Below, in pieces: positions 30,575 through 41,088 of a DNA stretch of 64,000 nt; the first letter of the stretch is position 1, and every line of letters starts with the position of its first letter. The notes under the pieces are model-generated. The model searched no databases. It was not told the DNA's origin and was given only the letters and a program-made list of their open reading frames with translations. The stretch is from sequence record ON529860.1. The stretch is one strand, 5' to 3'. The position numbers and the translations under genes are program-made.

Positions 30575-31777
30575 GTGAGCACCTTTGCTGTTCCGATCCT
30601 CGCGATCGACGACGTCTACGATCACCCCAACGCTGATCGCCTCTCCATCATCCGCATTCGCGGCTACGAAGCCGTCGCCGGCAAGGCCGAGGACGGATCG
30701 CACCGCTTCGTAAAGGGGGAGCGCATCATCTACGTGCCCGAGGGCGCGGTGGTGCCGGCCGCGCACCTGAAGGCGCGGGGCTACTGGAACGAGGCCAAGG
30801 ACATCGGCCTGCTGGCGGGAACCAAGGGCAACCGCGTCAAGGCGATCACCCTGCGTGGCGTGCTGAGCCAGGGCCTGGTGTGGAAGACCGAGGCCCCTAT
30901 TAACGGGAATGCCGTTGATGCCCCGTTGTCGCTCCTTCACGGCCACGGAGAGAATGGCGTGCCGCAAGTTCGGCTGGCTGCGCTAGGCGACGACGTCGCC
31001 GACTTCTTCGGCATCACCAAGTACGATCCGCCCATCCCGCCGGGCCTGGACGGCGACGTCTTTGGCCTGTTCGAGGCGATGTTCAACTACGACATCGAGA
31101 ACGCCAAGGCCTTCCCGAACCTGTTCACCGAGGACGACGTCGTCACGGTGACGGAGAAGCTGCACGGCACCTTCTGCCGGATGACCTACATGCCCGGCAT
31201 CGAGCCGCGCGACGATCTGTTCGGCGACGGCCGCGTGGCGATCACCTCCAAGGGCCTGGGCGCCGACGGCCTGGTGTTCAAGAACACCGCCTTCAACCGT
31301 CAGAAGAACGTCTACGTCCGCAACATGCTGCCGCTGGTGGACCACTTCGTCTCGGCCTGCAACCAGGACGCCAAGGGCCTGACCGTCCACCTGATGGGCG
31401 AGGTTTACGGCGCTGGCGTGCAGGACCTCAAGTACGGCCGCACCGAAGACCAGGGCTTCGCCGCCTTCGACGTCTGGATCGAGAAGTCGGGCTTCCTGGC
31501 CGAGGTCGAGAAGGACTACGCCTGCATCGCCTTCGGGGTGGAGCGGGTGCCGGTGCTGTTCGAGGGCTTCTACGACAAGGCGCTGATCGAAGACTTCGCC
31601 AAGGGCGACACCACGATCGACGGCGCCGAGAACATCCGCGAGGGCGTCGTCGTGACCCTGACCGGCGAGCAGGACAAACGCCCTGACGGCAACGGCCTGG
31701 GCGGCACCCTGCGCCCGATCTGCAAGGTCGTGTCGGAAGCCTACCTGACCCGCAAGGGCGGGACCGAACTGCAATAG
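30575..31777 (+). CDS. RNA ligase, DRB0094/Rnl2-like family
   Basis: N-terminal HPNADRL..YVPEG..LRG.LSQGL. TEKLHGT adenylylation motif, GEVYG, AAFDV, REGVV, KVVS..YL. Confidence 0.85.
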   Translation: MSTFAVPILAIDDVYDHPNADRLSIIRIRGYEAVAGKAEDGSHRFVKGERIIYVPEGAVVPAAHLKARGYWNEAKDIGLLAGTKGNRVKAITLRGVLSQGLVWKTEAPINGNAVDAPLSLLHGHGENGVPQVRLAALGDDVADFFGITKYDPPIPPGLDGDVFGLFEAMFNYDIENAKAFPNLFTEDDVVTVTEKLHGTFCRMTYMPGIEPRDDLFGDGRVAITSKGLGADGLVFKNTAFNRQKNVYVRNMLPLVDHFVSACNQDAKGLTVHLMGEVYGAGVQDLKYGRTEDQGFAAFDVWIEKSGFLAEVEKDYACIAFGVERVPVLFEGFYDKALIEDFAKGDTTIDGAENIREGVVVTLTGEQDKRPDGNGLGGTLRPICKVVSEAYLTRKGGTELQ

Positions 31778-35991: not shown

Positions 35992-36078
35992 TGGAGGTGC
36001 GACCTGGACTCGAACCAGGATGAGGGTTTCCCCTACGGCTTATGAGGCCGCTGCCTATTCCAGCCGCGCCACCGCACC
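35992..36078 (-). tRNA. tRNA, anticodon CAU, long variable arm, U73, encoded CCA
   Basis: GGTGCGG/TCGCACC acceptor, GCGGC-CTCATAA-GCCGT, variable arm AGGG-GAAA-CCCT, CCTGG-TTCGAGT-CCAGG. Confidence 0.85.
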
Positions 36079-36309: not shown

Positions 36310-36387
36310 TGGGAGCGGGGACACGATTCGAACGTGCGATCTCTTGGTTATGAGCCAAGAATGTTGACCGGGCTACACTACCCCGCG
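36310..36387 (-). tRNA. tRNA-Met(CAU), initiator-like (C1:U72 mismatch)
   Basis: CGCGGGG/CCCCGCT, CTTGG-CTCATAA-CCAAG, GCACG-TTCGAAT-CGTGT, CCA. Confidence 0.85.
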
Positions 36388-36391
36388 ACTC

Positions 36392-36780
36392 TTAGGCGCC
36401 AGTTCCGACGGCAGTGCGCCGGCTGGTACTCAACGGGCTCCTCCGCCGACCCTGCGCCAGGAACCATGGCGGGCACAGGATCAAGACGGAGGCGTTGCTT
36501 TACACCCACCTTGGACGTCGGACCCGTCGGGCCGACGAAACTTTGACCAGGGGTTGTGGGACGAGTAATCCCGCCCTCTGGCCCGGCGGACTACTAGGCC
36601 TGCCCTTGCCTGGGCTCCCCCAGGCGTCCGGCACGACTTTTGGTCAACCAACCTTTACTCACGAAGACGGACGTAGCACCCGGCGTGGATCGGAACTGGT
36701 AGGCCCCTCTCCTGAACGGGCCGCCGTGCTCTGGCGGGGGTCCGTCGTCATCGCCGCCGGCGTCCGCCTGCGAGAGTAAA
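36392..36780 (-). ncRNA. Unassigned ~390-nt structured RNA
   Basis: No credible ORF. Long-range helices 36690-99/36399-408 (10 bp), 36654-60/36774-80, TTGACCA/TGGTCAA arm. Confidence 0.55.
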
Positions 36781-36782
36781 GT

Positions 36783-37118
36783 GGGGAACTTTCTGTTCCA
36801 AGGCCCGGCAAGCCGGGGTTCCCCATACCCGTGGTCGCCCTTAGGCGGCCAGGAGGACTCGTTCGCCAGCGGCGAAGTTGTCGTTGGAAGCTTCGACAGT
36901 TGTCAAAGTTGGATCGTGAGCGGCCTAAACCGCCATGCAGACCCTAGCACTCGCCATTCAATCCCGTCACCAACGTCAATCGATACTGTTCGGCCCCTCA
37001 AACCGCGCCCGTCTCCCATCATAGGAGGGGGATTGGTGGAGCCGACGGGATTCGCACCCGTGTCTTGCCCGTCTGTTTCGTTCTCTCTGCTTCGGACCGA
37101 AGTCCTCCGCGCGACGAA
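36783..37118 (-). ncRNA. ssrA: Circularly permuted (two-piece) tmRNA
   Basis: T arm plus CGGCTCC-A-CCA (37034-44) precedes GGGGCCG (36991-97) with a G3:U70 pair. Tag ORF 36891-36841 = ASNDNFAAGERVLLAA*. Confidence 0.92.
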
Positions 37119-37122
37119 ATGC

Positions 37123-37163
37123 CTGTATACAGAGTCCGTTTTGGAGTGTCAAGGATTACGTCA
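37123..37163 (-). promoter_or_regulatory. tmRNA promoter
   Basis: TGACGT-N5-TTGACA-17/18-(G)TATAC(A). Confidence 0.7.
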
Positions 37164-37171
37164 AAGATTTT

Positions 37172-37258
37172 TGGAGGGACGGGTGAGAATCGAACTCACG
37201 CCAGGCTTTCGCCAGGAGGATTTGCAGTCCCCCGCCTTACCACTCGGTCCACCGTCCC
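37172..37258 (-). tRNA. tRNA-Cys(GCA) with long variable arm
   Basis: GGGACGG/CCGTCCC-U73-CCA, GGGGA-CTGCAAA-TCCTC, variable arm GGC-GAAA-GCC, GTGAG-TTCGATT-CTCAC. Confidence 0.88.
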
Positions 37259-37267
37259 CTGGCATCG

Positions 37268-37404
37268 GTCTGGAAAGGGGAACCCGCCCGTGCCCGCCGC
37301 AGGTCCCGTGGTCGGTCCCGGCGGCGTCAGGGTTTCACGGCCCCAGGTCGACCCGCTCCCGTGATAGAGGGCGATACGCTGCGGGCGGGCTCGCCTTTCC
37401 AGAC
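37268..37404 (-). ncRNA. Rod-shaped RNA, 6S-like (tentative)
   Basis: 11-bp closing stem GTCTGGAAAGG/CCTTTCCAGAC, second stem, asymmetric bubble, apical stem. 3' CCTGCGGCGG. Confidence 0.5.
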
Positions 37405-37463
37405 GAAAAGGACCGCCCTGTTGCACTCCCCGGAGGGATCGTGTGACGGCCCGTGACCCTCGC

Positions 37464-39502: not shown

Positions 39503-40888
39503 TCAGCCGCCGACGAGGCCGTCGTCGAACTCCATCGCCTCGACCTCACGGATATAGCGCAGGACGCTCTCCGAGAAGCCGTCGATGTGGACCCATCCGT
39601 TGCCGTAGCCGATGCCATTCGCATAGCTGGCGACGTTGATCATATAGGCCTTGCCGGCCTTGGGCGCCGGCAGTCGCCCGCCGCCCATGCCGCTGCTCAG
39701 CGTTCCCGACGCCTGTTCGTCGGTGATGACGATCAGGCGGTCGCAGGCGAACTGACGGTTCACCACGTCCACGGCCTGGGCCAGGGCGGTGCCCTGGTGC
39801 GGCTGCGAACGGATCACCGCCTCGACGCCCGCCATGCCCTTGCGGGCCGGGACCTCGACCAGACCGTTGGAGAAGGTCACGACGCGCACGTCGCCCGGCA
39901 GGATCGCCGCCAGCGTCGCCGCCGCATCCATCCGGGTCAGGTCCGACTTTCCGGACAGTTTTTGCCGCATGGAGTAGGAGACGTCGACCATGACCACGGT
40001 CGAACCCTTCAAGGGTTCGGCCTGATCAATCGTCGCCACGAGGGCGTCGTCCAGCGCCCGCTCGAACGAGGGCGCATAACGCGCCGCCGCCGTGAAGCGG
40101 AAGGGCAGGACGCGGTCCGCGCCCTTGCGCGCGCGGATCGCAGCATTGACCAGATCGCGGTCGACGCCGGCCTGATCCATGTTGCGCAGGTTGCGCAGCA
40201 GGGCGAGGTAGCCCAGCTTTCCGTCGGCCAGCAGACGCGTGAACGTCGCCTTCTTGTCGGCGCCGCCCGACAGGGCGACTTCCCAGGTGTCGGGCGCCGT
40301 CAGTTCATTGTCGACCAGCTTCTTGTAGAGGGCCTCGCGGTCGTCGTTCGCCGGCTTGGCGTGCGCCAGGAACAGAACGTCGCGCAGGCGCACGGACTTG
40401 GCCCGGTCGTACTTGGCGATCTGATAGGCGTCGAAGTTGCCGAAGGCCAGCGACAGCCCCTTCTTCACCTGAGCGGACAGCGGCGCCTTCTTGCCGTCGG
40501 CGCGCACCGGGTTGAGCGCCCAGTAGAGGGCCAGGAACTCGCTCAGTTCATCGGCGCGTTGGATGACGCGGGCGATGGTCAGCGACACCAGGGCCGAGCC
40601 GGACCCGCGTTGGGCCAGAACGACGAGCAGCAGAAGGGGGACGTGACGCAGCTTGGCGTCCTCACGCGCTTCAATCGCGATCTGGGCGAGGGTCTCGACC
40701 GGAACTTCCTTGGCGAGGCTCTGGATACGGTCGGCGATCGACACGCCGCTCTCGTAGAAATTGTCTTCCCACAGCAGGCAGGACATGACCGACCGGCGCA
40801 GGGCCTGGGTCTTGGTCATCCGATCGGCCGGTGCGCCTTCATGGGTGCGCGCGGTGGTCGTCTTGGGCTTTGCGTTGATCGACGCCAT
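39503..40888 (-). CDS. rsr: Ro60/TROVE-domain RNA-binding protein with vWA C-terminus
   Basis: RSVMSCLLWEDNFYE, LRHVPL, QRADEL, YQIAKY, TWEVALS, YLALLRNLRNM, DVSYSM (MIDAS), VITDEQ. AGGAG RBS. Confidence 0.93.
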   Translation of the reverse strand: MASINAKPKTTTARTHEGAPADRMTKTQALRRSVMSCLLWEDNFYESGVSIADRIQSLAKEVPVETLAQIAIEAREDAKLRHVPLLLLVVLAQRGSGSALVSLTIARVIQRADELSEFLALYWALNPVRADGKKAPLSAQVKKGLSLAFGNFDAYQIAKYDRAKSVRLRDVLFLAHAKPANDDREALYKKLVDNELTAPDTWEVALSGGADKKATFTRLLADGKLGYLALLRNLRNMDQAGVDRDLVNAAIRARKGADRVLPFRFTAAARYAPSFERALDDALVATIDQAEPLKGSTVVMVDVSYSMRQKLSGKSDLTRMDAAATLAAILPGDVRVVTFSNGLVEVPARKGMAGVEAVIRSQPHQGTALAQAVDVVNRQFACDRLIVITDEQASGTLSSGMGGGRLPAPKAGKAYMINVASYANGIGYGNGWVHIDGFSESVLRYIREVEAMEFDDGLVGG

Positions 40889-40910
40889 AATGGGTCCCCT
40901 CCTCGTCTGG

Positions 40911-41088
40911 TCAAGCGACCAAGAGGTCGGGGAGGAACAAGCACGAGCCCGGTTCATCCGGTGCGTCTACCACTTCCGCCACCTGCACCAGAGATGCAGG
41001 CCAGGACTTGAACCTGGATACCCTTGACGGGCGCCGGCTCCAGCGAAGTATAGGCTCGTTACGCCATCCCCGACCTCGCGGTCAGTGA
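40911..41088 (-). ncRNA. Y-RNA-like element D: permuted class-II (Leu-like) tRNA mimic
   Basis: Terminal stem GAGGTCGGGGA/TCCCCGACCTC, variable arm, T arm CCAGG-TTCAAGT-CCTGG, looped acceptor CCTGCAT/GTGCAGG, D arm GCG-GAAGTGGTAGA-CGC. Confidence 0.8.

Follow-up and report, generated by a model that had tools for sequence, protein, structure and literature searches.

The giant phage vB_BpoS-Papperlapapp (ON529860.1; 356,874 bp; Dolichocephalovirinae; host B. pondensis LVF1) carries a complete, well-formed ssrA gene of the permuted, alphaproteobacterial type, which very probably yields a functional tmRNA working through partners provided by its host. This gene for a two-piece tmRNA lies on the minus strand at about positions 36781-37120 of the window, by which we mean the whole stretch of 64,000 nucleotides that was analysed. 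The preliminary description of this DNA had proposed a phage-encoded tmRNA, and this is borne out by the 100% identity of positions 36700-37300, along with the surrounding 15 kb, to the complete genome of Brevundimonas phage vB_BpoS-Papperlapapp.

The gene has been missed in the public record. The features of ON529860.1 in this region are two tRNA-Met genes and one tRNA-Cys gene, and 36387-37172 is blank. In the Papperlapapp paper, ARAGORN was run for tRNAs and tmRNAs, with the comment "(none could be detected)" (PMC10070969); our ARAGORN run on the window returned three tRNAs and no tmRNA. The same locus is blank in the GenBank records JX100810, MH588545, MH588544, JX100814, MZ574433 and ON529850-ON529857, in each of which the Rfam model RF04321 (tmRNA_permuted) detects a tmRNA at 57-90 bits, and Bajun (ON529858) is the only record among the relatives with the tmRNA annotated. 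ARAGORN detects the tmRNAs of CcrPW, RB23 and Bajun and misses those of Papperlapapp, Colossus, BL10 and Rogue. Its failure to detect the more divergent copies accounts for the blank locus in at least 10 related giant-phage GenBank records. With the newer Rfam model, all these tmRNAs are recovered, so that the annotation can be corrected. A plus-strand open reading frame of 221 aa (36781-37446) lies across the tmRNA and tRNA-Cys genes; it has no Pfam match and was rejected as spurious.

The match to RF04321 scores 60.2 bits (gathering score 47; E = 3.7e-9 in the 64-kb window), covers the full model (positions 1-213) at 36841-37096 on the minus strand, and is the single match of this model in the whole 356,874-bp genome. 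A chance match is excluded because this score is significant and homologues are kept in ten other phages. The preliminary description had named ARAGORN and the Rfam alpha_tmRNA family as checks, and the outcome is divided: RF04321 identifies the gene, but with the curated alpha_tmRNA model (RF01849) the score is 47.8 bits, just below the threshold of 50, and the match is confined to model positions 73-180 of 355 (the tRNA-like domain), and ARAGORN makes no call. The full-length RF01849 model passes its threshold in relatives (CcrPW, 66.8 bits; Bajun, 57.4; Colossus, 53.5). The Papperlapapp tmRNA is therefore of the alpha type by layout, host range and relatives, and at the same time a poor fit to the curated RF01849 model. 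The Rfam scan found no riboswitch or other family at the tmRNA gene. Minimum free energy folding of the 338-nt precursor was uninformative (z = -0.13; T arm not recovered), and the structural assignments below come from a pair table that covers 11 phage and 33 host genes and sets each position at a constant distance from conserved anchors, or from the other sources given on each line.

37172-37258, minus strand: tRNA-Cys(GCA), the upstream neighbour, called by ARAGORN and Rfam and syntenic in all related phages
37124-37152, minus strand: putative promoter, with a -35 box TTGACA at 37152-37147, a 17-nt spacer and a -10 box TATACA at 37129-37124
37034-37120, minus strand: acceptor piece of about 87 nt, from the Rfam alignment and pair table, with the 5' end predicted from the promoter
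37120-37111, minus strand: 5' strand of the distal P2 helix, hand-drawn proposal
37120-37111 with 36970-36961, minus strand: distal P2 helix, AUUUCGUCGC with GUGACGGGAU, hand-drawn proposal
37105-37094, minus strand: GGAC-UUCG-GUCC hairpin of the acceptor piece
37072-37065, minus strand: 5' strand of P2a in the acceptor piece, followed by GAC
37061-37045, minus strand: T arm, ACGGG / UGCGAAU / CCCGU, read directly
37044-37038, minus strand: 3' strand of the acceptor stem, CGGCUCC, read directly
37037-37034, minus strand: A73 and the encoded CCA, read directly
36998-37033, minus strand: intervening segment of 36 nt, comprising a small hairpin and, ahead of G1 of the coding piece, a single-stranded leader of 10 nt, removal predicted
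36781-36997, minus strand: coding piece of about 215 nt, from the Rfam alignment, pair table and comparison
36997-36991, minus strand: 5' strand of the acceptor stem, GGGGCCG, in seven standard pairs with CGGCUCC and followed by the UCGA linker
36979-36973, minus strand: 3' strand of P2a, from the pair table
36950-36911, minus strand: candidate PK1, GUGC/GCAU and GGGUC/GAUCC, hand-drawn proposal
36841-36897, minus strand: tag frame GUC GAA GCU UCC AAC GAC AAC UUC ... GCC GCC UAA, read directly
36831-36783, minus strand: 3' pseudoknot or nested hairpin, hand-drawn proposal
36310-36387, minus strand: tRNA-Met(CAU), the downstream neighbour, annotated as tRNA-fMet in CcrPW and CcrBL10

The permuted order and the G3:U70 pair noted in the preliminary description both stand: the ACCA end at 37034 precedes a 36-nt spacer and the GGGGCCG that begins at 36997, and the G at 36995 lies opposite the U at 37040. 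All 12 pairs of the 7-bp acceptor stem and the 5-bp T arm, with its 7-nt loop, are standard, and the G3:U70 pair, A73-CCA, the GAC before the T arm and the UCGA linker are the same in the 33 host genes. The P2a pairs of the window are likewise all standard, and P2a has the layout found in hosts (3 bp, a 2x1 loop and 3 bp), with two pairs changed on both sides of the helix (CG AU AU in the window versus CG CG GC in the host). The first pair of the T arm is AU in the window versus CG in hosts, and acceptor pair 5:68 varies between CG and GC among the phages. The UUCG hairpin shows a compensatory swap of A:U to U:A in Kabachok and Marchewka; in a coding-piece hairpin, the changes are to G:U pairs only.

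Transcripts of permuted tmRNA genes are cut by the tRNA-processing enzymes (PMC11915505), and removal of the intervening segment is predicted here because permuted tmRNA genes are known to be processed in this way (PMC11915505). The comparison among phages is consistent with such removal. Within the Brevundimonas-phage group, identity of the mature parts is 93-100%, and in Gurke and Kikimora the intervening segment is replaced by an unrelated, structured segment of 126 nt between flanks that are about 97-100% identical. Conserved mature parts combined with a swapped spacer make up the pattern expected of a spacer that is discarded.

The longer spacers have features of their own. In Gurke (599-724), Kikimora (600-725) and Bajun (632-749; all in locus coordinates), the spacer is a conserved multi-helix domain of 118-126 nt, in which the pairs of the closing stem are kept through four double changes and the motifs ..CCCAUCCGGC.. 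and ..GUCAGGGGAUGAGGCUAGU.. recur. For the structured spacer of Bajun, the Rfam search gave no family match (best E = 1.7). Colossus, CcrPW and RB23 have a different spacer of 81-87 nt with a long closing stem, and the motif ..CCCAGCGA..UCGG.AUCUGAACGG.. is found in these spacers across two phage genera. The tmRNA spacers thus look modular and are possibly functional, for example as processing signals.

Beyond the tRNA-like domain, the 3' end, at about 36781-36783, matches the terminal motif of the alpha-tmRNA consensus (..GGAACAGAAAGUUCCCCAC). The helix homologous to distal P2 covaries in relatives (CGUCG/CGACG in CcrPW versus CGUUG/CAACG in BL10), and in CcrPW and Colossus an H-type knot can be drawn with a topology like that of candidate PK1 (UAGG/CCUA and GAUCU/GGGUC) and a matching distance to ..UGUC. 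Within the close group, the distal P2 and candidate PK1 sequences are invariant, leaving no covariation to read. The MAFFT alignment of 11 phages was unreliable in the PK1 region, and fixed-offset pair tables were used instead. Pairing of the 5' end of the acceptor piece with the coding piece, scored with RNAduplex, was no better than in shuffled sequences (z from -1.2 to +1.1), and its partners were inconsistent in the window's group.

The tag frame ends in VLLAA-UAA, with the stop codon at 36843-36841. If translation resumes at GCU (36891-36889), the tag is ASNDNFAAGERVLLAA, and if it resumes at GUC (36897-36895), the tag is VEASNDNFAAGERVLLAA. Accordingly, the degradation-type tag of the preliminary description holds as to its frame and its LLAA-UAA end, but its start at GCU is not fixed, given that GUC and GAA lie in frame just upstream. 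All 11 phage tags keep the NDN block, a hydrophobic-AA end (LAA or IAA) and the stop. In hosts, the resume codon is GCG directly after ..AACU or ..AAAU, and this position is taken by GUC in 11 of 11 phages, likewise after ..AACU or ..AAAU. The gap from GUC to NDN amounts to 0 nt in Colossus and PW, 6 nt in BL10, Rogue and Bajun, and 9 nt in RB23 and the window's group, and so is always in frame. The host comparison and this spacing lend modest support to resumption either at GUC, which lies two codons before GCU, or in the frame of GUC. A start at GCU is equally open: in Kabachok and Marchewka, where GCU UCC is replaced by GCA CAC, Ala is kept synonymously and Ser becomes His.

Rogue, which infects Caulobacter, and Bajun, which infects Brevundimonas, match base for base over a segment that runs from ..AAAUGUC across the whole tag and both stop codons to the first post-stop bases; their tRNA-like domains, spacers and PK1 regions differ. 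An identical tag within otherwise differing genes suggests exchange of tag modules between phages.

The tags of Brevundimonas hosts (ANDNFAGEVRLAA, ANDNFAGEVALAA, ANDNFAGEYAVAA and close variants) follow the pattern NDNFA..GE..LAA, with LAA or VAA at the end. Past its first residues, the phage tag reads NDNFAAGERVLLAA; it is of this host type and is two residues longer between NDNF and LAA. In other systems, SspB-type adaptors bind the N-terminal block of the tag, and the C-terminal block is the ClpX degron. Altered adaptor or protease routing, another suggestion of the preliminary description, finds no support: the tag keeps the host-like NDNF block and hydrophobic-AA end, and the phage encodes no SspB or ClpP. 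Such a host-like tag argues for ordinary ClpXP-directed tagging and against rerouting. A related proposal, which we regard as quite unlikely, is that the gene is not a mere spare: translation would resume at GUC, the longer tag VEAS-NDNFAAGERVLLAA would alter the decay rate or the choice of adaptor, and an early, host-independent operon would sustain translation. If this were true, the two extra residues between the adaptor-binding and ClpX-binding blocks, together with the N-terminal extension, would alter the destruction of rescued proteins, and an early operon of tmRNA, a further RNA and tRNA-fMet would keep translation going against host shutdown.

Upstream of the gene, the claim of an own promoter is supported by comparison: the hexamers are conserved across 11 phages, and TTGAC[A/T]-N17-TAnAnn is present at the matching position in every one of them. 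From Papperlapapp to Gurke, just 1 of the 12 hexamer positions has changed, as against 8 of the 17 positions that separate the two boxes. A strict sigma-70 scan does not list this promoter, the -10 hexamer ending in A rather than T, and the call is retained on comparative grounds only. A direct repeat, TTGAC-N7-TTGAC (TTGACGTAATCCTTGACA; 37147-37164, minus strand), whose second copy forms the -35 box, is kept in 5 of 5 aligned Brevundimonas giant phages and could provide a second -35 box or a regulator site.

No terminator-like site was found between the tmRNA and tRNA-fMet genes, and the first terminator-like hairpin downstream on the minus strand is at 36269-36246; it is thus likely that the tmRNA heads a longer RNA transcript and that its 3' end would be formed by processing. 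Directly 3' of the tmRNA, the stretch 36392-36780 (minus strand) is highly conserved in all close relatives, and its start, ..CGCAGGCGG.., recurs in Caulobacter phages; an additional conserved RNA is probably co-transcribed with the tmRNA from this stretch. In Bajun, locus positions 1-37, upstream of the tmRNA, give a weak partial match to the 5' end of the GOLLD RNA (24.6 bits; E = 0.0013), the match being cut at the end of the locus; in the window, there is no GOLLD match at the gathering threshold. Two of the neighbouring minus-strand tRNAs, tRNA-Met(CAU) at 35992-36078 and tRNA-Cys(GCA) at 37172-37258, are both 87 nt long and have a long extra arm, which is unusual for Met and Cys identities and is kept in Colossus, CcrPW, BL10 and Rogue. 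In the only RNA-labelled virome run that contains the region, 64% of the sampled words of the locus are present. A contig from that run, 36708-37102, crosses the intervening segment, and over 5 kb the helicase coding sequence is covered as thinly as the RNA genes; the contig could be DNA or precursor and shows neither expression nor processing.

The ten related phages have a homologue in the same arrangement of tRNA-Cys, tmRNA and tRNA-fMet (57-90 bits with RF04321). Identity at the locus is 95-100% in Domovoi, Kabachok, Marchewka and Bambus and about 90% in Gurke and Kikimora. In CcrColossus (83.8 bits) and CcrPW (90.4 bits), the tmRNA lies between tRNA-fMet and tRNA-Cys, and CcrBL10, CcrRogue, RB23 and Bajun carry a permuted tmRNA at 74-88 bits, all with RF04321. 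Searches with blastn also reach BL47, C1, C2, J4 and others. The other Dolichocephalovirinae share with Papperlapapp the locus, the promoter layout, the ..UGUC before the tag and the terminal motif, and RB23 and Bajun also have the UUCG hairpin after the distal P2 strand. In contrast, the P2-PK1 stretch is only 53-63% identical to that of the other phage clades, their spacers measure 81-126 nt against 36 nt in Papperlapapp, and the tags differ (that of CcrPW is VNDNDAPVMEQRLAA).

One alpha_tmRNA gene was found in 57 of 61 Brevundimonas genomes, at about 200-240 bits, the genus having been reached by a pattern scan. The cellular tmRNA of Caulobacterales has the same permuted order as that of the phage and shares its P2a layout, the NDNF start of the tag, the hydrophobic-AA end and the terminal ..AACAGAA..CCAC. 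The acceptor stem of the Brevundimonas ssrA (GGGGCCG/CGGCUCC), with G3:U70 and ACCA, is identical to that of the phage, and the T loop, UGCGAAU in the phage, is one base off in most Brevundimonas hosts (UGCGAUU) and the same in one host. Elsewhere the two have diverged: the P2-PK1 stretch of the phage is 44-49% identical to host genes, and its RF01849 score of 47.8 compares with 200-246 bits in hosts. Moreover, the 5' hairpin follows the distal P2 strand in the phage and precedes it in the host, and the phage RNA has about 30 nt less after the stop and 3-5 more residues in its tag, with GUC instead of GCG at the resume-codon position. Divergence from the host combined with fixed synteny fits an old acquisition inherited within the phage subfamily.

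The low score in the alpha model and the failure of ARAGORN might be taken to mark a decaying relic, either a non-functional old copy of the host ssrA or a leftover ssrA integration site, and phages that integrate into ssrA indeed often carry ssrA fragments (PMC9004378). However, the Papperlapapp gene is complete rather than a 3' fragment, its promoter is conserved, all pairs of the tRNA-like domain are kept through compensatory changes, and the same locus is occupied in at least 4 phage genera while the spacer and flanks vary freely, making a relic extremely unlikely.

Permuted phage tmRNAs themselves are already known (CcrPW, CcrSC, CcrBL9, Bajun), and it is the Papperlapapp tmRNA that was previously missed. 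The Caulobacter ssrA goes back to Keiler, Shapiro and Williams (2000), as cited in PMC9004378; for phages, ssrA genes have appeared in listings from the Bxz1 group of mycobacteriophages onwards (PMC4131195). A 2022 survey counted 402 phages with a tmRNA, 53 of them permuted, and its Table S1 includes CcrSC, CcrBL9 and CcrPW (PMC9004378); a 2025 tmRNA database holds 79 phage sequences (PMC11915505). Phage Shash was reported with one tmRNA, and the phiCbK genome paper does not mention tmRNA (PMC3556154). The marine phage Melnitz and the pelagimyophages have an alpha-type permuted ssrA with an early-looking promoter and no phage smpB reported, as here, but Melnitz belongs to an unrelated lineage with a different host and has a glutamine riboswitch 3' of the gene, unlike Papperlapapp (PMC9004378). 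Mycobacteriophages of the Bxz1 group and Bacillus phage G likewise have their own ssrA that relies on host SmpB, although the gene order is unpermuted there (PMC4131195). A scan of IMG/VR for the signature of the tRNA-like domain yielded at least 120 matches, and at least 75 of these contigs have a complete permuted tmRNA gene, with very diverse tags. Among the matches listed, several come from 100-360-kb AT-rich phages, the genes have TTGACA promoters and long closing stems in the spacer, and some tags have an N-terminal extension before NDN.

The protein complement of the phage bears directly on how the RNA could work. The preliminary description had noted the absence of smpB from the window, and this absence extends to the whole 356,874-bp genome, in which no SmpB was found (PF01668, E <= 1) with a search that matched in control genomes. 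Equally, the whole phage genome yielded no SspB, ClpP, RF-1/ArfB or peptidyl-tRNA hydrolase, the control genomes again being matched. Without SmpB, SspB, ClpP, ArfB and Pth of the phage's own, the RNA could act only through host proteins. The phage does not carry a self-sufficient system of ssrA plus smpB, there being no cognate smpB in its genome, and SmpB was found in 5 of 5 Brevundimonas genomes searched, so that the use of host SmpB, as originally proposed, is the only available reading.

The same absence would allow an abundant phage RNA to compete with the host tmRNA, and the RNA might thus serve as an inhibitor or decoy that soaks up host SmpB (or AlaRS or EF-Tu) and shuts down host trans-translation. 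There is a proposed precedent, the mini-tmRNA of phage DS6A (PMC4131195), which, unlike the Papperlapapp RNA, consists of the tRNA-like domain only and has no tag frame (PMC4131195). A decoy needs just that domain, whereas here the NDN block, the in-frame spacing, the LAA-type end and the stop are conserved in 11 phages, and the 3' terminal motif is conserved too. We therefore consider a decoy very unlikely.

A different possibility is counter-defence, in which the phage tmRNA would replace host tmRNA that is destroyed or withheld, or clear ribosomes stalled by ribotoxins, together with the Ro60, Y RNA and RNA ligase neighbours; replacement of cleaved host tmRNA had also been raised in the preliminary description. 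Host tmRNA might be lost to a ribonuclease defence or to cell-cycle-timed turnover, the latter being known for tmRNA in Caulobacter. Genes for TROVE/Ro60 (39503-40957, about 2.4 kb off) and an RNA ligase (30575-31777) are found no more than about 6 kb away from the tmRNA, and its own promoter would make the phage copy independent of the control of host ssrA. The linkage is not conserved, however, as in CcrColossus some 20 kb separate TROVE (about 107-113 kb) from the tmRNA (about 132 kb); furthermore, the tag is host-like, and the sequence is silent on cleavage of host tmRNA. Taken together, these observations leave replacement unlikely.

Under the preferred reading, a phage-borne tmRNA working with the host machinery, transcription would start from the gene's own sigma-70-like promoter, the tmRNA probably being the first gene of an RNA operon that continues into the conserved RNA of ~390 nt and tRNA-fMet. 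Host tRNA-processing enzymes would then mature the transcript: RNase P would cut 5' of G1 of the coding piece, an endonuclease and 3' exonucleases would trim the spacer back to the encoded CCA, and the two pieces would be held together by the acceptor stem and the P2 helices. Host AlaRS would charge the RNA by way of G3:U70 and A73, and host SmpB and EF-Tu would bring it to ribosomes stalled on broken or stop-less mRNAs. Resumed translation would append (V-E-)A-S-N-D-N-F-A-A-G-E-R-V-L-L-A-A, and the tagged protein would pass to host SspB/ClpXP. The likely benefit would be extra capacity for ribosome rescue during an infection in which mRNAs are under degradation, which fits the 24 tRNAs that the phage genome also carries.

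In the searchable literature, we found no experimental demonstration of the function of a phage tmRNA. The Dolichocephalovirinae carry ssrA at a fixed locus, always without smpB, and offer, with B. pondensis LVF1 or Caulobacter CB15 as host, a culturable system in which the benefit of ssrA to a phage can be investigated. Their conserved mature parts combined with replaced spacers also make these genes a set of natural variants for studying how the precursor of a two-piece tmRNA is cut.
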